Shown: piece by piece, positions 505 through 22,498 of the stretch
How positions within the stretch are numbered: position 1 is the first letter of the stretch
Layout of the letters: every line of letters starts with the position of its first letter
Source: Epithemia pelagica
Lineage: Eukaryota; Protista; Bacillariophyta
Direction: 5' to 3'
Length of the DNA: 64,000 nt
Assembly: GCA_946965045.2 (NCBI GenBank)
Contig: OX337242.1
Span: forward strand, 744,001 to 808,000
Translations under genes and position numbers: made by a program
Notes under the pieces: model-generated
Databases searched by the model: none
Told to the model about the DNA's origin: nothing
What the model saw: the letters and a program-made list of their open reading frames with translations, nothing else

Positions 505-2217
505 ATGACGGATTTGACGGTTTTTGCCGAAGGGTTAATTTCGACCGTGGCACGAGCCTTTTACGAAGACGAGGTGGTGTGTTTGATTGATGTATTGATT
601 CGCGACAAGTTTTTGCGCGACGATGACATGGCGCCTCGATTGCAATTGCCCGTCAAAAAGTTGCGGGCCACGCTCCAATTTTTGCAATCCGAACACATTG
701 TCAAGGAAGAAAATGTGGATGATTTGCATGAAGGAGGGAGTCAAGCGACCAAATTCTTTTACATTGATTACTGTACTGCCGTTCATTCCATTCGATTGCG
801 GTTGCATTTGCTGCGACAAAAATTGGAAAAGGCGGAATTGCAGGCGCGATCGAGTTCCTTTTATTTGTGTCCAGGCTACAAGGATCAACGATGCAATGGG
901 CGATATACCGAAGAAGAAGCGCAACGAGTCTTGGATTACGAATCGGGACTCTTTTTGTGTCAAGAATGTGCCCGCAATTACGAAAATGATCCGAATGCAC
1001 CCCCCAAAAGTTCCTATACCTTGCAATTGGTGGACAATGAAAAGGATTTAAAGTTGGCCATGGACAATCTACGACGTCTCAATGTTCAATTGTCGGCCAA
1101 AACCATTGGCAACCATCAATTGCGACCCGGAATTTACGATTGGTTGCAAAAGGTACGAGGAGGCACGGGCAAACCAGGAGCCACGGGCACCGCAGTGACG
1201 CATGCCAAACTGGCGGTTGCACCCATTACCAGTAATTTGCCGTCGGAAAATTTTGCCTTGGGCATTGGATCGACCCGATTGGCGGGGACTGGTCGTACGG
1301 CTGGAATCAAGGCTCTCAAAATGCAAAAACAGGGTCTGGCCGAATCCTCGGCGGAAGCACGACAATACTTGGTGGGAGGATCCCGAGGAGGAAGTAACCC
1401 CAATGGTGGAGGCAGCCACAGCCACAATAGCAACACCCACAGTGGCCACAACAGCAACACTACCACTGAACTCATGTTTTTGAAAAGTGCGCATGGACAC
1501 GAAATTCAATTCACGGTCGAAAAGGGGGGTGGTGCGCGTGCTCAAGTCTTGGCCGGAGCTCATCGTGGACAAGGAGGCGGAGGAGGAGCCCAATCCGGAC
1601 CACACGCCTCTGTTTCTTCTTCTCAGCAACCCCTTCTTTCGCAACGAAATCATATTCGAGGACATCGAAGACGCAAATTAATGGATACAGCCGCCAGTCG
1701 TGTCGGTGTGGCCTTGCCCTTGCCAGTGCGAGTTGCCCTCTGGGCCCATCAAAAACGAAAACGCCAAGCGCAAGCCGAACATGAATCCAAACGGCACAAA
1801 CAATCCTCGTCCAATAACAACAACAACAACAAGGCATTGTCGTCAATCCCCGATTTTTTGGTAGACAATATTGGTTTGGCCCGTCACGAAGGACGGCGTC
1901 GGACCAAAGACGACGACGACGAACAGGACGATGATGAGAACGATGATACAGGCCTTGGAGGTGAACCCGAATTGGTCTTGGATCCCGAATTGGCCGAATT
2001 GGAAGAAACGACGGAAGAGGCTCGATTGGCAGCCTTTCAAGCCATGTACAAGCAAGAAATGGAACGACAAGAGCGACTCTTGCAATTGTCGTCCTCCACG
2101 ACTACCAACCAAAACAATCCGAACAACAACAACAACAATGCGAATCTACCGGATTCCACCCTGGACCCCGACGAGGACGAAATGGCTACAATCTCTTGGG
2201 AAGAAGGATGCGTCTAG
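505..2217 (+). CDS. GTF2E1: General transcription factor IIE alpha subunit (TFIIE-alpha)
   Basis: N-terminal winged helix (LIDVLIRDKFLRDDDMAPRLQLPVKKLRATLQFL), then a zinc ribbon (YLCPGYKDQRCNGRY...FLCQEC) and an acidic C-terminal tail. First ATG is at 505; the ORF track starts at a non-ATG codon at 451. Confidence 0.85.
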   Translation: MTDLTVFAEGLISTVARAFYEDEVVCLIDVLIRDKFLRDDDMAPRLQLPVKKLRATLQFLQSEHIVKEENVDDLHEGGSQATKFFYIDYCTAVHSIRLRLHLLRQKLEKAELQARSSSFYLCPGYKDQRCNGRYTEEEAQRVLDYESGLFLCQECARNYENDPNAPPKSSYTLQLVDNEKDLKLAMDNLRRLNVQLSAKTIGNHQLRPGIYDWLQKVRGGTGKPGATGTAVTHAKLAVAPITSNLPSENFALGIGSTRLAGTGRTAGIKALKMQKQGLAESSAEARQYLVGGSRGGSNPNGGGSHSHNSNTHSGHNSNTTTELMFLKSAHGHEIQFTVEKGGGARAQVLAGAHRGQGGGGGAQSGPHASVSSSQQPLLSQRNHIRGHRRRKLMDTAASRVGVALPLPVRVALWAHQKRKRQAQAEHESKRHKQSSSNNNNNNKALSSIPDFLVDNIGLARHEGRRRTKDDDDEQDDDENDDTGLGGEPELVLDPELAELEETTEEARLAAFQAMYKQEMERQERLLQLSSSTTTNQNNPNNNNNNANLPDSTLDPDEDEMATISWEEGCV

Positions 2218-2636
2218 GTAGTGTTGGAAAAAGGCAGTGCTTTGGGGATCGAACGACATACTGAGAAACATGTACAAACGAAATCTTGTTCGAGTCGAAC
2301 GACAGGACATACATGGGAGGAGGATGACTTGACCTTGTTCTTCTTCACAACTGAGTCTTTTTGAATGTTCTCCAAAGGACCTATGACCAACGAAACGATT
2401 CTGCAATACAACATCTACTTCTAGTGAACGTGGTGGACATTTTCCTGAACATATATTCGGAAATAGATTCTTTTGTTGTCGATTCGTAATGAATTAGAGC
2501 TATATCGCTATGTCATCATCTCGATTCTCAACCGCATTGGCCACAAAGACTATCAAAACCTCCGATGTCAAGCATTCCTCTGTTTTCTAGCGTTCGGAAT
2601 AACCTTACAGTTATTTGAAAGTGTATTATTCATGAT

Positions 2637-3485
2637 GTGATACCGAGAGGGTTTATAGTTTTGCTTGCCAGGTGGAATTGGATATATGGAAGATTCAATA
2701 TTGAAAGAATGGTTGCGGCTCCCTCCTTTCTCGCGTTTACCAACCTGCTCTTGTCCACGACAAGTTCTCCATCATTTGCCATGGATAGTAGGAGTGTTGC
2801 GGTACCCATGATTTGTATTTTTGGAAGGCCGGGGGCGGGAAAGACAACCGTTGCGGAACAAGGCATTGCCAAGCTAGTAGAACTGCCAACGGCCACCACA
2901 CCAGGAGTAGATCCCCTTGGATTGGATCTGGATATTTGTGTTCCACAATGGATGAAAGATAACTTTGCCAAGGGACTTTATCCTACCTTGGAGCAACGAT
3001 TGGAGTTTGCGGAAAAGGCCTGTGACTACATTGATGAATCCGTTCTTGCCAAACAACAGAAAGCCGAAGAAGAACAAGATGCTCTCAAGTCGTCTCAACG
3101 GATCACCGTAGCTATTGTGTCGTTCAGTTTTGTCAACACGGATCTTCGAGATTACTACCGTCAACGATTTCCTCATGCCAAATGGGTACTCATTGATACT
3201 ACGGAATCGGAGGCTTCCAGGAGGATCGAGCAACGACAAGGCCATTTTTACAAAGGGGCCGCAACCGCCGAAAAACAAGAACCGGAAGACTTTGCAAACA
3301 GTGTCAGTACAGAAAAACCGTCGACCCCCGTTGAAGAGGGATTAAATGATGAATGGAAGTTTGCTCCAGTCGAATTTGAGCACGTCATCTTGGATGGAAC
3401 CAAGTCTATCACTCAAAATTCCGATCATGTGGTGGAATTGATTCAAGAAATGGTAGTCAACCATGTAAAGTCTCTAACAAGTTGA
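2637..3485 (+). CDS. Gluconokinase/shikimate-kinase-like P-loop small-molecule kinase
   Basis: Walker A GRPGAGKTT, LDLD motif and lid RRIEQRQGHFY, as in GntK-type kinases. Start codon uncertain. Confidence 0.7.
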   Translation: MIPRGFIVLLARWNWIYGRFNIERMVAAPSFLAFTNLLLSTTSSPSFAMDSRSVAVPMICIFGRPGAGKTTVAEQGIAKLVELPTATTPGVDPLGLDLDICVPQWMKDNFAKGLYPTLEQRLEFAEKACDYIDESVLAKQQKAEEEQDALKSSQRITVAIVSFSFVNTDLRDYYRQRFPHAKWVLIDTTESEASRRIEQRQGHFYKGAATAEKQEPEDFANSVSTEKPSTPVEEGLNDEWKFAPVEFEHVILDGTKSITQNSDHVVELIQEMVVNHVKSLTS

Positions 3486-3883
3486 CCATAAGTTCTTATG
3501 AACCAAGAGATAACCACCAAGACGAACTAACAGGCGGCACTGTTCTGCCATGTGCTTGTCGTTCAGGGTTCCGGACCAACACTTGGTAGATTGGTTCAAC
3601 AGCTGCTTCTTTGGACCTGGAAGAGAAAGGTAATGCGTGGATAATTTTTTCATTCACTTCCCATCCACGCTGTTGAGAAGAGACGGCCACAGGAATCAAG
3701 CGTTACAAAGCCCTCTGGGACGAAACGTCTTTACTTCCCGATTCAATGATCAAACGAAAGTTTAGTATTTCGAAGGACGAGGTGATAATTCACTCGGGGT
3801 ATGTGAGTTAGTGTCGTTCAAAACGAAAGTTTGCTAATCAAAATGGGTTGTTTCTAAGTCTTACATGATGATACATTGCACTT

Positions 3884-4501
3884 CTACTCTTGTTTCTTTT
3901 GTTCAGGTACAAATGGGACTTCCGTAGTCAGATGGGAGACCAGTAACTTGAGGAACAAGAGAGGAACAAACCACTCCATTCCAGATTCCGTAGGAGGAAG
4001 AATAGTCTTCATGGATGTCACCAAAATTGTGCTGGCCGTTATGGCCAGGGCCGTTGGGCGTTGGAGATACAAAGGCACACAAAGAACAATCGCAGCGGCA
4101 ACCGACAAGGCACCATACAGCCGACAAAAGTATTGGATCGAGTCATTTGGTACATAAAGCCAAGCCAATAAACCAATTTGAACTCCATGAAGAGCAATGA
4201 ATCCCATGTGATCCACGAATCCTTGTGAATCGCGATGGTACCATCGCTTGGCTGAAGATGTGGCGTTGGTGACGATTCCTCCAATTAGGTCCATTCCCAG
4301 AAGAAGAACGACCCATTCATTGGTTGGGTTGTCATTGGTTTGCCGGTAGTTTATCCAACAAAGCGCACCAATGAACAAGGACGCTCCAAACTGCAGTATG
4401 AGCTCGGCCGAGGTTGCACCGGGTCCAATGAACTGGTCTAATGCTCCTAGCAAACCTGTTCGTGGCTCCGGATGACTTTCATAGTAGGTGTACTTTGGCA
4501 T
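3884..4501 (-). CDS. Intronless multi-pass membrane protein of unknown function (about 6 hydrophobic segments)
   Basis: 205-aa ATG ORF with several hydrophobic helices. Polar motifs DQFIGPGAT and DLIGGIVTNATSSAKRWYHR...FIALH resemble uncharacterised bacterial membrane proteins (recalled, not searched). Confidence 0.7.
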   Translation of the reverse strand: MPKYTYYESHPEPRTGLLGALDQFIGPGATSAELILQFGASLFIGALCWINYRQTNDNPTNEWVVLLLGMDLIGGIVTNATSSAKRWYHRDSQGFVDHMGFIALHGVQIGLLAWLYVPNDSIQYFCRLYGALSVAAAIVLCVPLYLQRPTALAITASTILVTSMKTILPPTESGMEWFVPLLFLKLLVSHLTTEVPFVPEQKKQE

Positions 4502-4922
4502 ACCTTTTTCGTTTAGTACGAATAGGAGAAGTGTAGATTTCCAGATTTTGTTGCAGGCTCTTTATTTTTATGATTGCCTTGGATCTTCGTCGTAGAACTA
4601 GGTATTCTGCGTTTAGAAGATTGTGGAACAACAAGGAACACTCACGGGGCACTACGAACTATGAAGAAGCTCCAGCGTCCAGAGCCACAAATTTAGGGGG
4701 CACCATAGAACGCTTCCCATGGCCCATGTGTAGAGCCAGAAACCAAGCAACATGGCCAAGGGACCTTAGGTCAACACGAGTTCCGAACCTTGAACAAGAT
4801 GTTGGATTGACTCCCCAGATACAGATCGTCACAAAACAGCCACATCGCCAATCGGTATGGCTATATTTGATGGAACTTTAGGACATACCCCAATTTCTGA
4901 ACAGTTTTCCCGTCAACAGTCA

Positions 4923-6506
4923 TCACATGGTAGTCCCAGAAGTGTTCGTTTCTGATGGTTGGGTGAACTGTCGAAAGAAGGTAGCCGTAGCGTGGTACGT
5001 AGACTGGACATTGGAGGTGGCTACCATACCACCCCAATGCTCTTGATTGTACTTTTTGGTCGTTTTGCCCACAAATGTGACCCGGTGAGAATCGGGACGT
5101 CGCAAATCACAGAGTGGTTCTGGTGGATTGCGAATCCATTCCTGAAAGGCCTGATTGGATGCAGTGTCATTGTACTTTGCCTTGATTTCCAATTCCGCCA
5201 ATCGAGTTTCGTAGGCTTCCAATTGTTGCAGTTTGACGTGTTGCTCGCGCAAGAGAGGCGAGCCCTCATCCAATTTGGCTTGCAAGCGTTGACATTTGGC
5301 AATTTCTTGCAGCAGTCGCCGTCGTTCCTTCTTTTCACGGCTACTGAGCAACCGTTGTTGGGCCAACTTGGGAAACCACAATTGCCTCAAGGCCAGTCGT
5401 TCTGCCTCTGTGGAGGAACCAGCATAGCTGGGGTGCAACAAGAACAAGTGATGCAATACCAAGGCAGTGGCGACGGACAAATTGAGGGAATCTGCAAATC
5501 CTCGCAACGGCAAGTACACACGCAAATCAGCCAAATCCAACATCTCGTGAGAGCAACCGACAGCTTCTGTTCCAAACACAATGGCCAACTTGTTTGGAAG
5601 CGGCCAACAGCTATTTCCTTCCACTAGTTGCAAAGCCTCTGGAACCAGTGGAACAGCCTCTTGCGAAAGATCTGTTACCCATACTTGATGACCAGAATCT
5701 TTGAGCGCTTGAACACAGTCTCGCGTGGTATCGTATTCGGTGATGGTAAGCCATTCCGTGGCATTTTGAGCAAACAAATGATGCATTTGATGCTGTTCCA
5801 TTTCTTGCGCTGTCAACTCCACCTTTTTCTTCTTTGTGTCCACTTTGCTTTTGTCATGGTCCTTTGGTCGGTCTCGTGAATTGGTCTCGTTCTTATCGGT
5901 AGTTTCTGATGATAAGCCATTCTTTTCATCGTCATCATCATGATTGCCATCTTTAGGGCTGATTTGGCCCTTCGTATTCTCATCCTCCTCATTTTCCATG
6001 GCTCGGTCAAGATTTTGCAATTGGGAGTTGACCGAATCCACAATGGCTACATTTTGAACTCCCAAGGCTTCTGCCGTTCGTAAAATGGCCGAATAATTGT
6101 GATCGTTGGTACACCGTTCAATGACCACTGTCAATCCCATGCTCCGTAATCGAATCACTGTTTCCGCCTTGCGCAACAAGCGCAATTCCAAATCGGGAGC
6201 GTCCCACATTTTGTCCGTCGCAGGATCTGATTCATCTCCCGCTGTGCTGCTTGTCACAGACGGATCGACTGAGGTGATGAAGGGAAACGAGGCTTGTCGC
6301 GAACATGTACCATCAGTTGAGCTATCCCTATCCTTCTTTTCCTCGTTACGGTTGTGATTGGACATGATCCGAGTGGTATTGTTTGATAGTGTGTGTTCGC
6401 CATGAGTCTTGGAGGGAGGACGAAAGAATCGCTGAAGAAGCACAATCGACGTCGCCGCCGAAGCTGCGCCAAGGATAAAGAAGGAGAATCTTTCTGAAGT
6501 TGTCAT
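4923..6506 (-). CDS. SpoU/TrmH-family (SPOUT) RNA 2'-O-methyltransferase
   Basis: All three SpoU motifs: NYSAILRTAEALG, IVFGTEAVG, LPLRGFADSLNLSVA. N-terminal hydrophobic segment and a low-complexity insert. Confidence 0.88.
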   Translation of the reverse strand: MTTSERFSFFILGAASAATSIVLLQRFFRPPSKTHGEHTLSNNTTRIMSNHNRNEEKKDRDSSTDGTCSRQASFPFITSVDPSVTSSTAGDESDPATDKMWDAPDLELRLLRKAETVIRLRSMGLTVVIERCTNDHNYSAILRTAEALGVQNVAIVDSVNSQLQNLDRAMENEEDENTKGQISPKDGNHDDDDEKNGLSSETTDKNETNSRDRPKDHDKSKVDTKKKKVELTAQEMEQHQMHHLFAQNATEWLTITEYDTTRDCVQALKDSGHQVWVTDLSQEAVPLVPEALQLVEGNSCWPLPNKLAIVFGTEAVGCSHEMLDLADLRVYLPLRGFADSLNLSVATALVLHHLFLLHPSYAGSSTEAERLALRQLWFPKLAQQRLLSSREKKERRRLLQEIAKCQRLQAKLDEGSPLLREQHVKLQQLEAYETRLAELEIKAKYNDTASNQAFQEWIRNPPEPLCDLRRPDSHRVTFVGKTTKKYNQEHWGGMVATSNVQSTYHATATFFRQFTQPSETNTSGTTM

Positions 6507-16275: not shown

Positions 16276-16648
16276 TGCAGTGTCTTTCGCTTCGAGAAAG
16301 GACGGTGTGTTGAAACAATGGCTCTATGCCTTCAGCCACGTTCGACAAGGGGTACAGTAAACCCCGATTTTGTACTTTAGTACTATTTTCCACTTCTCTT
16401 GAAGTCTCATAACCTATTAGAACGTACCTCCAAGGTGCATCATAACCTATTCGAACATGCCTCCAGCGTGCAACAACAACAGATGCAAAAGCAAAGCGGG
16501 TGATAAACTACTACGGATATGAACGAGCACAACAACAGACATGTCAACAACGTGCACTGCTCACTACTACTACTACTTATTCCTGGCGGGTTGGTTCATT
16601 ATTCAACAATCAAACAAGAATCATGAACGGCTGCCCCACCACCTGTGA

Positions 16649-17313
16649 TTAGTTCTTCTTTTTGTTGTTGCGTCGTGTCGACCGACGAGCAAACAAAGGT
16701 GAGTCATCGCTATCATTGCTGTTGTTGTTGTTGTTCCATTTCTTCTTCTTCTTCTGTAACTCATCATCCTCTTCACGTTCATGTCGTGAATCAGGGCTCA
16801 TCAAGTCGAAAGCCTTGAGAAGGCGCTCGTCTTGCATCATGGTGACATCCTGAGAAAATGAGTCCTTGGTGTACAGAACACCATCGTCCGACGACTCGTC
16901 AGTTGAGGCTTCTTCTTCTCCTTCTCCTTCGTGAATGGTACCAACCCCGTGGTCCGTGCGTTCAGCATCCTTCATCTTGAAGGCAATGACGCTCAACGGG
17001 TCTTTGGATTGCATCGAACGGTGACGCTGGTCGAGGTAAACAAGCTTCCAGCAGTCACCGTCGATGCAAATGGTTCCTGGAACCGATACAACAAAAAGGT
17101 AAGTACGTGAAACAGCAGAGACAAGTGTACAACGTGTTTCTCACCTGTGAAGTTGTCCACAGAAAACGAAAAAGGCGACGAAGACGACGATGACGACACG
17201 ACAATGCCATCAGTGGCAACACCATTGAGGACAGCAGTGGTGCCTGAAGCTTGGTCCTTCAGGATTGCCGTGAGGCAATATCCATCCGGTTGCTTCTGCT
17301 CATCTGCTTGCAT
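16649..17313 (-). CDS. Cargo ORF A of the CAC element, spliced, about 198 aa, function unknown
   Basis: Exons 17313-17145 and 17076-16649. The 68-nt intron (CAG|GTGAG...TACTTAC...TTCCAG|G) joins ORF 16993..17466 in frame to ORF 16649..17014, giving ...VDNFTGTICIDGDCWKLVYLDQRHRSMQSKDP... The start may lie further upstream. Confidence 0.55.
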
Positions 17314-17599
17314 GGTTTCCAAAAAGTGAAGAGATGCAACAATCAAACGAAGTACTTCTCCACCATGTGTAGAAGAGCTTGCGTGCGCTTCCCGCCTTGT
17401 CCGCAACAAGACTGCACACGTGCTTGACCTGTGCGAACGACGTTCCCACTTTTTGAATATCAACAATCATTCCACAATCGGGAATGATGAGAGAGCGAAG
17501 CACATGGTGATGCAAGATGCAACAATCAAACAGCGCAGGAGGCCACTCCATCGTCCGCGCCAGCAGCCAAGGAGGAGGACGGCGACGGAACTAACACAA

Positions 17600-18190
17600 C
17601 AAACAAACTTTGACGACGACGACAACAACCCAATCCACGGACCACGGAGCTGACAGCAAACAACAACAACAACAAAACACGCCACGGCGACATCAACAAA
17701 CAACAACAACAACAAAACACAGCACGGCGACATCAACAACACAATCCACGATGCTGACAGGAAACAACAACAACAACAACACCAACAACACAACCCGCGA
17801 CAACAAGTGACGACAACAACGACGACGACAACACAACCCGCAACAAAGACAACAGCAACAACGTCAAGACAAGCCGTGGCAACAACAACACATCACTGCG
17901 ACATCAACAAACGACACCAACAACACAATCCACGACGCTGACAGGAAACAACAACAACAACAACAACAACACAACCCGCGACAACAAGCGACGACAACAA
18001 CGACGACGACAACACAACCCGCGACGAAGACATCAGCAACAACGTCAAGACAAGCCGTGGCAACAACAACAGTAGCAACACAAGCCGCGACGACAACAAC
18101 AACATCAACAACGACAACGCAAGCAACCACGCTGACCTCAAACAACAAGAAGAAGAACGACAACGACACAAGCCACGACAACACACGCCC
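17600..18190 (+). repeat. A/C-rich (AAC/GAC) low-complexity tract containing an imperfect duplication of about 181-184 bp
   Basis: Plus strand almost devoid of T. The block CAATCCACGA(T/C)GCTGACAGGAAACAAC...GTCAAGACAAGCCGTGGC occurs at about 17742-17880 and about 17926-18061. Confidence 0.85.
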
Positions 18191-18252
18191 CCGTGGCAGA
18201 AGCAACGGAAAAGAACAGGACTGCTGGTGGCAGCAAAAACGACGCAACAACA

Positions 18253-18678
18253 ATGAGATTGACTGGTGGAATGTTTGAGGTCGGAATAGTAGACCGTGAT
18301 TCAGAGGATCACATGTGGACTCGGAGCCACAGTGCCGCTCTCTTTGTCGGCAAGACAAACTTTGGGCATGGCTTTCAAGTGTCTTACACCGGCGCCGACA
18401 AAACGCTGGTCCATAAGACATTTCTGTCCCATGAAGTGTTGGCTTGGGATGTCTTTCGTGTCAGGAGTCAACGCAATGGACACGAGGGACTCGAGTTCTT
18501 CGCAGTCGTTCCATTGCCTTTGGGACATGAAGGAGACCGATGTCACGTTGGAGAAGAGTGTCGGGAGTGGATGCTTCGCTTCACCATCATGGGGCACCAT
18601 GAGTCTTTCAAGCTCCTAAAAACAGCGTGTCGTGACAGTGGTTTCCGGAAGCGGGGACTTGTACTAGAGAAAGCTTAG
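18253..18678 (+). CDS. Cargo ORF B of the CAC element, 141 aa, convergent with the transposase, function unknown
   Basis: Non-repetitive, protein-like ORF (MRLTGGMFEVGIVDRD...WMLRFTIMGHHESFKLLKTAC) ending 51 bp from the transposase stop. First ATG at 18253. Confidence 0.5.
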   Translation: MRLTGGMFEVGIVDRDSEDHMWTRSHSAALFVGKTNFGHGFQVSYTGADKTLVHKTFLSHEVLAWDVFRVRSQRNGHEGLEFFAVVPLPLGHEGDRCHVGEECREWMLRFTIMGHHESFKLLKTACRDSGFRKRGLVLEKA

Positions 18679-18729
18679 TCATTAACCAAAACCTTACTTA
18701 GTATTCCTTACATGCGATTATGGTAGCTA

Positions 18730-19666
18730 TCATGATTCCGACTGAAGCAGCTTTTGGTGTCGTAGTTCATCAAGTCGGGGGTACTTCTCCTCTTGGATAG
18801 CGAACATCGATAGAAGTGCCACCCGCTCAGAGTCACGCAAGGCCTTGTGCTTGTTGCCTTTGTAGGATTTGGGGGCTTCTTGATCACCCCCCTCACCATT
18901 TCTCCTGTTCACGTTCCGTTGTACCGCTTTCGTGACCGCAACAAGCCTGTCTTGCACTGCGTCATTCTTTGTCATCACCTCCAACTGAGCTACAACTTGC
19001 CCCTTTGTTGAGTGGTTTAGAGACTTCATGCGGCTTTCCATCTGCGCCCCAGTCTGATGGGCGCGCTCGCCTTCATCTTCACCCAAATCACCGATTCCGC
19101 CGTACCGTTTCACTGCGTCAAGTGCATGGTCTTCCAAAATGTGCATCTTGGGTGAAATTGTGATGTCGAGTGCTCGCCATACCGAAGAAGCATGCTTCAA
19201 ATGATGCTCTAAGTGGAGCACCTGTTGTGGCGTGATGTGATTCCGAGGCGTCTGCAAAATAGAAAAAGTGGCATCGAGATGCCCCATCAATCGTTCATAG
19301 GCATCAATCACCCTTTTGATTGTCGCATTATCCACCCATTTCTGTTCGTCCGGGAGGTCCCGGACGTAGACCCAAATCTCTTCGAAGATAAACTTCCGAT
19401 CAACCAACACTGTGCTGCAGGGGTTGCCTTGCAGAGCACCCCCATGAAACGCTGCCCTGTCAATTCCATGGGCACGCTCGATCCCTTCGAACTTGCGATA
19501 GACAGGTTGTCCATGCTTTCGTGAGTTCTCAGGGACACTCTTCTCTTTGTCCCATTCATGTTTTGCTTCTTTAACCAACTTTGCCCTTGCCTTCCGCTCA
19601 CCATCCTTCTCCTTCAGGCTTTGTTTCAACAAAGCAATCTCAGCTGCAATGTGCTCATCCGGAACC

Positions 19667-19704
<38 letters not shown>

Positions 19705-22164
19705 TTCCTGTTTCTGCCGCGTGATTTCCATCAGCTCGCTCACCACTTGTTCTTCTTCCTTTTTCCGTCTGAGCCATTCCGTTTCAAGATCGATCCAGGC
19801 TGCTGTGTAGATCTCACAGGCAGCCTGGAGATCACTGTACAAACAATCTAGAGCCTTGTTCACAACGCCCAACTTGATGTGGAGAACAGGCATTGACACA
19901 TGACACACATCCACGGCAGTAAGCAAAGGCACATTTTTTATTCCCTTTCGCAGGGCACCCTTTGCATTCTCATCGAGCGTTTTGTTGTATTCAAGCTGGG
20001 CCTTCATTGTCGCAAGCGACCACTTTGTGCCTCGAGCATGACTAAGTGGCTGCCATTCTGCCTTTGTCAGCTGACAAAAGGCACACCAGCAGCTAGACAT
20101 GCCTTCTCGCCCATAGTTGGTCATAATTTGGGCTAGGTCTCCTGCCAAGGACACTTCTACTGGGAGTCCTCCATAGAAGCGTGTGTCGCTAGGTTGGTCA
20201 GGACGTGACCCCGCAAGCCTTGAGTAGTACCACTCTTCATTTTCATTTAGTTGGGCTCGCTTCCACACGTCGATACCGCCTTTCTCTGTCAACTGACTTA
20301 GCGCACTGTCTAGTTTTGGCATGTAGGTGCTTTTCAGGATCTCGTAGGTGTCCTTCTTGCACCTAGCATCTGCTAGACTGTAGGAGTCTTTGTGTTCCGT
20401 CCACTTATTTGAGCTAGGGTCATGTTTCCGACAAATTAAGACCGCATGGGCACGAGAGAAGCCTTTCCCATGGTCGGCCGACACAACCATATCAATAGAG
20501 GTCCAATGCTGTCGAGTGTCAGCTCGATTAAACACAGTATCGCAAAAGTAAAGCAATACCTGTGTCGCATCTCGCACACTCCATTCGATTGACTCGTTGT
20601 TTAATTGTAGCGTATTGCATTCCGGTGCCACAGCCTTCTTAGTTACTAGGACTCTCTTTAGCTCATCAGGTGAGCTAACCAGGGGACATCCGAACCAGTA
20701 CTTGAGGTGACGTGCAATCAGTCTTGCCTGCGAGTAGTTTATGTTTGCGTCCGACCACATGGCAAACGTTGCAACCGGGTCCATTGCAACGCACGCAAAC
20801 TTTTGTTGTTTCACTGCCTCCTTGACCACATTCGGAAATCTCTTGCCGAGATGGGCAAAGAGATTCTTTGCCGTATACTCCATGTCGGTCAGCTCCTCTT
20901 CCTGCCCCTCCTCTAACTGATCCTCCTCTAGCTCATCTACCTCGTCATTTCGCACATCTGTACTCGGCTTCAACACCTTCCGCGGCCTGTCGTTTTGTTT
21001 CCCGAGTGCTTCCAAGACTTGATCAATCCACTTGAAGTGTCTGTCTTGCTCATGGAAGCTTTTCAAATTGGTAGATTTTGGTATCCGAACCAAAGATACC
21101 ATCCTACCGTTAGACATCCGGGTCGTGAGCACATCGTGCTTTCTTCGCTTGTCAGATAGAGTGACAAGGTCTCGCACAAGATCACTAACCACGCGTTTGT
21201 TTGTTGTGTCAATTCCATAGGCATGCAACGTAGGTGTGCTCAATTTTTGATGGGGGGTCATAAAACTTTGAACCCCCAACATTTCGCCTCTTTCTCTCTC
21301 GTTGTGTTCATACAGTACTTTCATGACGGAGGCGAGGGCACCAGCAAGATCTTGCTCCTCAAAAGATTCGGATTCCAAAAAGTATTCTTCCATCACATCG
21401 AAGAACTCCGGCTTGAAGACTTTCGGAAACAAATGGCAAATCAGCTGTTGCTTGATGAGTTGATTCCGGCTCACGTGCTGCTTGTTATTGTTCTGGTTGG
21501 TAGCAGGAGTGGTGATCTTTGAATTGTTCTCCATTCTCATCGCTCGTTTTCTTTCATTCTCCAATGTCTCACTGGAGAGAGAAACTTGCTTTTGCGTCCT
21601 CTTGTCATCAGCAGCTGCTCCTCTTGGCCTCTTCAGGATGCTACTTCTGCGCCGCCTTGGAGATGGGGTTTTTATCAGCGTTGTTGGATTCGTAGTCGTC
21701 CCCGTAGAACTGTCACCAGCTTGTTTTGTTGTTGCATTCAGAAGCAGCTTTTTTGTTTGTACTGCAATGGATTTGGTATTTTGAATCGATGGCTTGGTGA
21801 AATTTCGGAAGACATAAAGCGGACTTGCACTCGTTTTGTCGCAACCCACTTCAAGGAAATGTCGCCGTTGCTCATTTCCATACCTGCTTTTCGTGAGCGC
21901 TGTGATGTCTCGTAGGTGAAACCGGTCTAGGAAGGTTTCAATTTTCCTCTCTTGAACTCTCCACGACGAGGATGTTGATTCGTTCGTTGTTGCCACTCGT
22001 GACACCCATCCGACAACACTCAATAGGCACATTAGGGACTCCGTAGAGATCCTAAGTAGATTAGCGAGACTGTTCTCATCGCTTTCACCTACATTTATGC
22101 CATACCACCATGGCCTATTGGCCGAACCAATTTCACGGATCAACTTTGCGAGTGCTTCGTCCAT
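18730..22164 (-). CDS. RAG1-core/Transib/Chapaev-like DDE transposase (1144 aa)
   Basis: D1 VVSADHGKG; D2 LAGDLAQ...WCAFC (CxxC); PVLHIKLG; PKMHILEDH (Hx4H); GIGDLGEDEGER (E). D1-D2 spacing is 112, D2-C is 18 and H-E is 20, against 108, 19 and 20 in mouse RAG1 (D600/D708/C727/H942/E962). Contains a poly-Q insert. Confidence 0.85.
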
Positions 22165-22498
22165 GACGATCCAAGTTGTTGGAGGCTACTACTCCAGCGG
22201 AAGATGGCAAAAATAGTGCAATCGCGAACACTTTCTAGGGTATTATGGACAACTATCATCTGAATGAAGCTGTGCAATATGTTCGCGATTGGAGAACTAC
22301 ATCCCGCGGTATCATCATCGTTGATGCGCAAATCACGAGTTCTGCACTTCAAAAAATGGAACGAGATACGATACACACATGGGCACGTGTGGAGGGTCGG
22401 CCGGCGAAGACCTACAACCTAGAGACCAAGACCAAGTGAATACTGTAGGCATAATATTACAATACAAAATCGGCTCCTTGTCGAACGTGAGCAAGAGT

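Follow-up and report, generated by a model that had tools for sequence, protein, structure and literature searches.

A 64,000-nucleotide stretch of the genome of the diatom Epithemia pelagica (the window) contains, at 16337-22489, a 6153-bp copy of a DNA transposon of the cut-and-paste type that is young and mobile. Its transposase is predicted to fold like RAG1, and its two ends are built from the same conserved blocks, set at spacings that differ by 11 bp. Asymmetric bipartite ends have already been published for RAG1-type transposons (insect Transibs, 12/23; a pelagophyte RAGL, 4/13). The best explanation of the present case, which we hold at roughly even confidence, is that the element is a young RAG1-fold, Chapaev-like transposon with functional, family-specific differentiated ends.

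Copies were counted in the organism's own 60.5-Mb assembly. The family of the element (family 1) is represented by nine full-length and four short, non-autonomous copies, together with fragments. Six full-length copies are uninterrupted and 99% identical, two are internally rearranged, and one is stretched; copy lengths of the element range from 6131 to 6153 bp. The full-length type is referred to as subfamily A and the four short elements (∼2 kb) as subfamily B, which has only the first 83 and the last ∼322 bp in common with the full-length type, at 80%–90% identity. Matching 3-bp flanks were found at 11 insertions (AGC, AAC, ACC, TCT, ACC, CGT, TGT, CAT, CAC, CAA, and TTT). The flanks of the copy at C4:840895-846689 do not match (TAT versus GGT) and its interior is rearranged (query 1-1505, then 1618-6153); recombination between copies may have produced it. 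The stretched copy, C4:2513125-2545683, owes its length of 32.5 kb to insertions nested within it and to tandem arrays in its interior, and its outer flanks retain the matching CAT duplication. The contig of one transposase relative (P0001) is the locus of an already counted copy in another assembly.

An empty allele was found for the subfamily B copy at C1:5464094-5466143. Contigs of three public runs of the same organism fuse its flanks and skip 2053 bp, which corresponds to the 2050-bp element plus 3 bp. The existence of this allele fixes the boundaries and the 3-bp duplication and indicates recent mobility of a non-autonomous element with these ends. In those runs, the empty site (C1:5463900-5466350 region) was found beside the occupied form, which indicates heterozygosity or strain polymorphism.

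AAC-rich tandem arrays with units of 40, 30, and 181 bp lie at window positions 17657-18110, where they occupy part of the 2.4 kb separating the transposase stop codon from the left end. Similar AAC-rich arrays, in a 24-bp register, are present at many other loci (C17, C1:665386, C7:3032221, and C16:2962836).

Features of the family 1 element in the window and genomic positions of the family 2 copies
Feature	Position	Strand	Remark
Left target-site duplication, AGC, 3 bp	16334-16336	+	Direct repeat of the right flank
Terminal 14-mer of the long-spacer end, CACGTTCGACAAGG	16337-16350	+	Left end, 3′ of the transposase gene
Terminal 8-mer of the long-spacer end, CACGTTCG	16337-16344	+	Identical at all 26 ends, in both subfamilies
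Positions 9-14, ACAAGG	16345-16350	+	Within the termini, only positions 9-12 are hypervariable between A and B
13-bp interval from 14-mer to box, GGTACAGTAAACC	16351-16363	+	Holds 11 left-specific bases; from the sequence and the left/right alignment
Internal 11-bp box, CCGATTTTGTA	16364-16374	+	Begins at position 28 of the long end; from the sequence and the genome-wide pattern search
33-bp subterminal repeat, two tandem copies	16407-16472	+	85% identical; left end only
Transposase ORF, single exon, 1144 aa	18730-22164	-	RAG1-like core, aa 459-1080; coiled-coil insert, ∼aa 786-881
Right-specific insertions, 8 bp (22443-22450) and 7 bp (22427-22433)	22427-22450	-	From the left/right alignment
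Internal 11-bp box of the short-spacer end	22463-22473	-	Position 17 of this end, which is on the 5′ side of the transposase gene
Terminal 14-mer of the short-spacer end	22476-22489	-	Followed inward by 2-bp AG, 22474-22475
Right target-site duplication, AGC, 3 bp	22490-22492	+	Direct repeat of the left flank
Family 2 copies	C17:3035442-3039671 region; C1:2723770-2727999; C11:19825-24059; C18:2129353-2133120		

The preliminary description of this DNA had reported bipartite ends with an 11-bp asymmetry of the spacer, and this is borne out. Between the 14-mer and the box lie 13 bp at the left end and 2 bp at the right, where the reverse complement of 22463-22489 reads as the left end's 14-mer, AG, and then the left end's 11-mer. 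The partial similarity described for ∼12 further bp is also present, with 8 of 12 positions alike in the left/right alignment. A genome-wide search with the pattern CACGTTCG-N6-30-CCGATTTTGT gave 25 exact matches, compared with none for the reversed pattern used as a control; the spacing was 19 bp in 13 of them and 8 bp in 12. One further short-type end was found with one mismatch, giving 26 ends (13 + 13). No spacing other than 8 or 19 bp occurs among these 26 ends of the nine full-length and four short copies, so the offset is fixed across the copies of the family and is not a private indel. Every element in which both ends were identified pairs a long with a short end, none being long/long or short/short, and the transposase gene invariably has the short-spacer end on its upstream side.

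The 8- and 19-bp spacers are counted between the 8-mer CACGTTCG and the 11-mer box, the blocks that are conserved across both ends and both subfamilies. Each end has two such blocks, and the two spacer classes lie about one helical turn apart, as in a 12/23-type asymmetric bipartite signal. Of the spacers of 12 and 23 bp originally proposed, the 11-bp difference stands wherever the boundaries are drawn, whereas the values themselves came from chosen boundaries and become 8 and 19 with blocks defined by the data. A resemblance of the box to the RSS nonamer had also been put forward. It amounts to 7 of 9 positions and is seen in the opposite orientation only; it was rejected as evidence of homology with the nonamer and carries no weight. 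All copies go back to one recent ancestor, being 99% identical with the addition of a derived subfamily, and the fixed spacing is therefore no evidence of selection.

When the left end is aligned with the right, similarity extends over ∼75 bp and is broken by three indels, the left end having an additional 11 bp and the right end an additional 8 and 7 bp. Measured from the cleavage site, the positions of the box at the two ends differ by 11 bp, and those of the next shared motifs by +3 and −4 bp, not by a whole turn. The word GTACAGTA sits between terminus and box at the left end and recurs on the other side of the box at the right end. No counterpart of the 33-bp subterminal repeat was found in the right 590 bp. 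After the terminus, the box is the longest word common to both ends, and its length was reached in 1 of 500 shuffles. At positions 9-14, A has ACAAGG at both ends and B has TTTGGG at the left and CTTCGG at the right. Outside positions 9-12, the terminal ∼90 bp are ∼95% identical between A and B, compared with ∼80% further in. Spacer variation between these two subfamilies is confined to positions 9-12; the remaining spacer is conserved, the left interval GGTACAGTAAACC at 13 of 13 positions in subfamily B, and all end-specific segments are kept in both. The ends are long (∼75–90 bp), imperfect, differentiated inverted repeats.

The sequence of the transposase has no match in Pfam or the PDB, and a PDB search with a 22-sequence profile matched only coiled-coil proteins, through the insert. 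Language-model features of the protein point to RAG1 (score 0.96). An AlphaFold model of aa 420-1100 has a pLDDT of 92.8, with model residues 367-462 forming the inserted coiled coil. In a Foldseek search of the PDB, all 45 significant matches are RAG1, amphioxus BbRAGL, or HzTransib (best E value 1.5e-11), and the next match has an E value of 0.03. With VIA-align, model residues 40-660 were superimposed on mouse RAG1 460-1008 with a Z score of 25.0 (470 residues, rmsd 4.1), and Z scores of 22 were obtained for both BbRAGL and HzTransib. The earlier suggestion of a RAG1-like transposase is thus supported at the level of the fold, the diatom enzyme being of the RAG1-fold DDE type. A word-based protein search found three relatives, and an exhaustive search found 994 at E values up to 1e-3. 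Alignments of 22 and 55 relatives show conservation of D564, D676, C694xxC697, H762, H1008(4)H1013, and E1029/E1033. From the motif context, these conserved residues would be equivalent to RAG1 D600/D708/E962. According to the predicted structure, the enzyme is a DDE transposase with a RAG1-core fold and Cys/His pairs of the ZnC2/ZnH2 type. Inside the coiled-coil insert, a poly-Q tract is encoded by a perfect (TGT)12 run at window positions 19667-19703.

The N-terminal model has a pLDDT of 69.8 and consists of an alpha/beta domain, a disordered basic stretch, and a helical module. A low-confidence (disordered) acidic linker, aa 391-425, joins the conserved N-terminal module to the core. Residues 1-420 are poor in Cys and His, and the N-terminal model has no zinc-finger match. 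Foldseek returned only weak matches to winged-helix regulators for this model (E values of 0.2–1), and a wide VIA search only a helical hairpin (Z under 6). In the VIA-align comparison, no part of the transposase model aligns with the nonamer-binding domain of RAG1 (389-458). The N-terminal domain was considered as an equivalent of that domain and not accepted as such; the fold matches are weak and the RPRK motif is not conserved.

No RAG2-like (kelch) gene was found, and no other ORF in 16337-18730 has a family match. The convergent 161-aa ORF at 18193-18678 was rejected as a partner gene, with no Pfam match, an Atlas score of <0.9, and low recognition. Two metagenomic relatives of the transposase (L038 and L039; 36% identity) have small convergent ORFs immediately following the transposase, of 174 aa (L038:3905-4429) and 160 aa (L039:3705-4187). 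These resemble each other and not clearly the 161-aa ORF, for which no convincing alignment to them was obtained.

The closest predicted structure in the Atlas is a nematode DUF1280 cluster (TM 0.63), with vertebrate RAG1 behind it (TM 0.61). DUF1280 (PF06918) matches 5 of 55 relatives and not the transposase itself. The relative P0059 scores 28.5 bits against the PF06918 model, for which the curated cut-off is 25, and matches the transposase in phmmer with an E value of 2.8e-30. The RAG1 family gave no match at E values up to 1 in the transposase or the 55 relatives, with a Pfam version that does not include the newer RAG1 domain models, and Transposase_21 (PF02992) gave none in the same proteins. 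No second, TnpA-like conserved gene was found in the element, and the N-terminal Chapa zinc-finger domain is absent from aa 1-420 of the transposase. DUF1280 has been described as comprising Chapaev transposases and clustered with RAG1 (PMC3985635), Chapaev and Chapaev3 have been treated as clades of the Transib superfamily (PMC4411706), and a “CMCT” clade has been set by C(2)C + H(3-4)H motifs, CA..TG termini, and 2- to 5-bp duplications (PMC12730594). The diatom element combines a DDE transposase that has C(2)C and H(3-4)H with CAC...GTG termini and a 3-bp duplication. From this duplication and the link of some relatives to DUF1280, it probably belongs to a Chapaev-like branch of the CMC/Transib (CMCT) clade. 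Some Transibs make 3-bp duplications (preprint 10.64898/2026.08.26.747230), so the length of the duplication alone is not decisive. With a 3-bp rather than a 5-bp duplication and no RAG2-like gene, the element departs from the canonical Transibs and RAGLs. Its place is probably with the Chapaev-like (CMC/CMCT) elements rather than with Transib or RAGL proper. As to an occurrence “far outside deuterostomes”, the diatom does carry a RAG1-fold element, but such a distribution is not new, since 12/23-like ends are known from insect Transibs (PMC1131882) and 4/13-bp asymmetric ends from an active RAGL of Aureococcus (PMC9435367). In a literature search of incomplete coverage, we found neither Chapaev-like elements reported from diatoms nor asymmetric ends reported for Chapaev elements.

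Several known systems resemble the diatom element in part. Some Transib families have 5′ and 3′ ends that resemble RSS12 and RSS23 (Kapitonov and Jurka, 2005; PMC1131882, “Structure of Transib TIRs”, Fig. 4C). Like the diatom element, the insect Transib5, Transib2_AG, and TransibN1-3_AG described there have a RAG1-related transposase, CAC termini, and bipartite ends with the internal block ∼11 bp further in at one end. In contrast, they make 5-bp duplications and have CACAATG-type heptamers and an A-rich nonamer in the RSS orientation, and their transposases match Transib/RAG1 by sequence; the diatom element has a 3-bp duplication, a box that is T-rich on the CAC strand, spacers of 8 and 19 bp, and an enzyme with no RAG1 Pfam match. 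All Subgroup I Transibs have asymmetric ends, and Transib-like genes occur in bacteria, fungi, and plants (PMC9435367). The same study describes AanRAGL, an active RAGL transposon of the pelagophyte Aureococcus anophagefferens, with 13- and 10-bp terminal elements, spacers of 4 and 13 bp, and 5-bp duplications (Tao et al., 2022; PMC9435367). It is similar in being a RAG1-type transposon of a stramenopile alga with two terminal elements at unequal spacers. [quoted passage not shown] ProtoRAG, whose 27/31 ends are reviewed alongside the RSS12/RSS23-like ends of Transibs in PMC8355894, likewise has two-block ends with unequal left and right spacing, and differs in its RAG2-like partner and its offset.

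Chapaev and Chapaev3 (PMC3985635, PMC4411706, PMC12730594) are similar in their DDE transposases with C(2)C + H(3-4)H, their CA..TG termini, and their 2- to 4-bp duplications. At the sequence level the likeness runs through the relatives that match DUF1280, and the nearest predicted structure is the DUF1280 cluster. Published Chapaev elements come from animals and have a Chapa zinc finger at the N terminus, in some cases accompanied by a RING; in contrast, the protein of the diatom has no Cys/His-rich N terminus, contains a long coiled-coil insert, and is itself below the DUF1280 threshold. Like EnSpm/CACTA elements, the diatom transposon duplicates 3 bp of its target, has CAC...GTG as its termini, and carries a subterminal repeat in one of its ends. 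Those elements, however, encode Transposase_21 (PF02992) and a TnpA-like second gene, whereas the fold neighbors of the diatom enzyme are RAG1 and DUF1280.

A sister family (family 2) is present in the same genome. It is 4.23 kb long, with ORFs of ∼1084 aa that are 37% identical in amino acid sequence to family 1; its four copies are 99% identical and have 3-bp duplications (GCA, AAG, and ATA). Its ends share only CACGTTCCGA / CACATTCCGA, which form inverted repeats of ∼10 bp, and CACGTTC / CACATTC are retained at the termini. No shared internal box was found in family 2: the longest common word past the terminus is 7 nt, a length reached by 127 of 500 shuffles. At positions 17-28 of its gene-5′ end, the position of the family 1 box, the sequence is CCAGATTTATAC, identical at only 7 of 12 positions. 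Families 1 and 2 have CTTTAGTAC in common in their gene-3′ ends (positions 39 and 50; 9 of 500 shuffles, with no correction for the six comparisons). Together with the likeness at position 17, this sharing may be taken as a lead and not as evidence, and conservation of the bipartite architecture with its 11-bp offset cannot be demonstrated beyond family 1.

The C18 copy of family 2 is truncated beside a solo short-type end of family 1 (C18:2129268). Decayed single copies of other relatives, with stop codons and 44%–54% amino acid identity over fragments, were seen at C4:1158438-1160230 and C3:4212378-4213334. Searches of the same genome with DUF1280 and with P0059 revealed no further families. 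Two fragments with 50%–57% identity, P0011 and P0013, suggest that relatives of the family exist in other diatoms. For the comparison of ends, CACGTT words upstream of the L038 and L039 genes were rejected as termini, since single short contigs cannot define ends, and two further metagenome loci were left out because they match over only 49 residues.

The asymmetry could also be a neutral, inherited indel, a reading that we regard as possible though somewhat improbable. The 11 bp would have arisen once in the ancestor of the family and been harmless, their near-one-turn length being a coincidence, and only the terminal 8–14 bp, perhaps with loosely placed subterminal motifs, would matter. The left and right ends do differ by three indels (11, 8, and 7 bp), and with three of them one of 10–11 bp is not improbable. 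The near identity of the complete full-length copies and the origin of subfamily B from the same ends agree with a single inherited event. Family 2, in which inverted repeats of ∼10 bp accompany four nearly identical copies with 3-bp duplications and in which no shared word stands out from the shuffles, points in the same direction. A neutral origin is harder to reconcile with the box as the longest perfect block shared after the terminus, or with the better conservation between subfamilies of the terminal ∼90 bp, including the 13 left-specific bp, than of the interior. Moreover, differentiated ends are functional in many well-studied transposons.

At the other extreme, the ends may obey a true rule of the 12/23 type, in which synapsis and cleavage require one short and one long end and a dimeric domain binds the box, as in RAG. 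Such a rule would be either inherited from a common ancestor of RAG1, Transib, and Chapaev or convergent; we consider it unlikely. The offset equals the difference between 12 and 23, the core of the enzyme has the RAG1 fold, all 13 elements combine a long and a short end, and transposons of this enzyme superfamily repeatedly show bipartite, asymmetric ends (PMC1131882, PMC9435367, PMC8355894). The presence of CTTTAGTAC in both families may be added to these points, with the reservation about uncorrected comparisons given above. However, the pairing of long with short ends in all copies is explained by descent, and family 2 does not have the architecture. An equivalent of the nonamer-binding domain was not found in the transposase, the box is oriented opposite to the RSS nonamer, and the duplication is of 3 rather than 5 bp. 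In vertebrates the 12/23 preference depends on RAG2 (PMC8355894), and the element has no RAG2-like gene.

Functional, family-specific differentiated ends remain the preferred explanation. The occurrence of only two spacer classes, the constant pairing of long with short ends, and the retention of end-specific segments within a terminal ∼90 bp that is better conserved than the interior were counted in its favor. Counted against it were the weak winged-helix matches, the unconserved RPRK motif, and the missing counterpart of the nonamer-binding domain; the three indels with other motifs at +3 and −4 bp; and family 2, which works with ∼10-bp inverted repeats and no shared box. Two-block ends with unequal spacing are also found in piggyBac (3/31) and the P element (9/21), whose enzymes and offsets differ from those of the diatom element. 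The end architecture of family 1 is probably inherited and family specific, and it may be regarded as an analogue of the 12/23 RSSs and of the asymmetric ends seen in some Transibs, RAGL, piggyBac, and P elements. In the most likely mechanism, the catalytic core would recognize the CAC terminus in the way that the heptamer is recognized by RAG1 and Transib, and the box would be recognized by another part of the protein that binds DNA and is tethered through the disordered acidic linker. With an offset of one turn, the box would face roughly the same side of the helix at either end, so that one protein could bind both while the ends could still be distinguished.

The origin of the 12/23 rule is debated, with Transib ends, RAG2, and the hinge of the nonamer-binding domain as candidates. 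As a test system from outside the animals, family 1 is natural and apparently active, with intact single-exon transposase genes, a 2-kb non-autonomous partner, a one-turn difference between the ends, and a RAG1 fold without a RAG2-like partner. If the pairing of left and right ends is not obligatory, the family is one more transposon with differentiated ends, and its value lies in documenting a Chapaev-like RAG1-fold family in diatoms. If pairing is obligatory, discrimination of spacing would not need RAG2. There is a small chance that the 8/19-bp architecture is a working one-turn spacing rule in a Chapaev-like, RAG2-less diatom lineage that makes 3-bp duplications. Were this so, asymmetric synapsis of bipartite ends would not have originated with RAG, RAG2, or HMGB1 and would be an ancestral or repeatedly evolved trait of the whole RAG1-fold superfamily.
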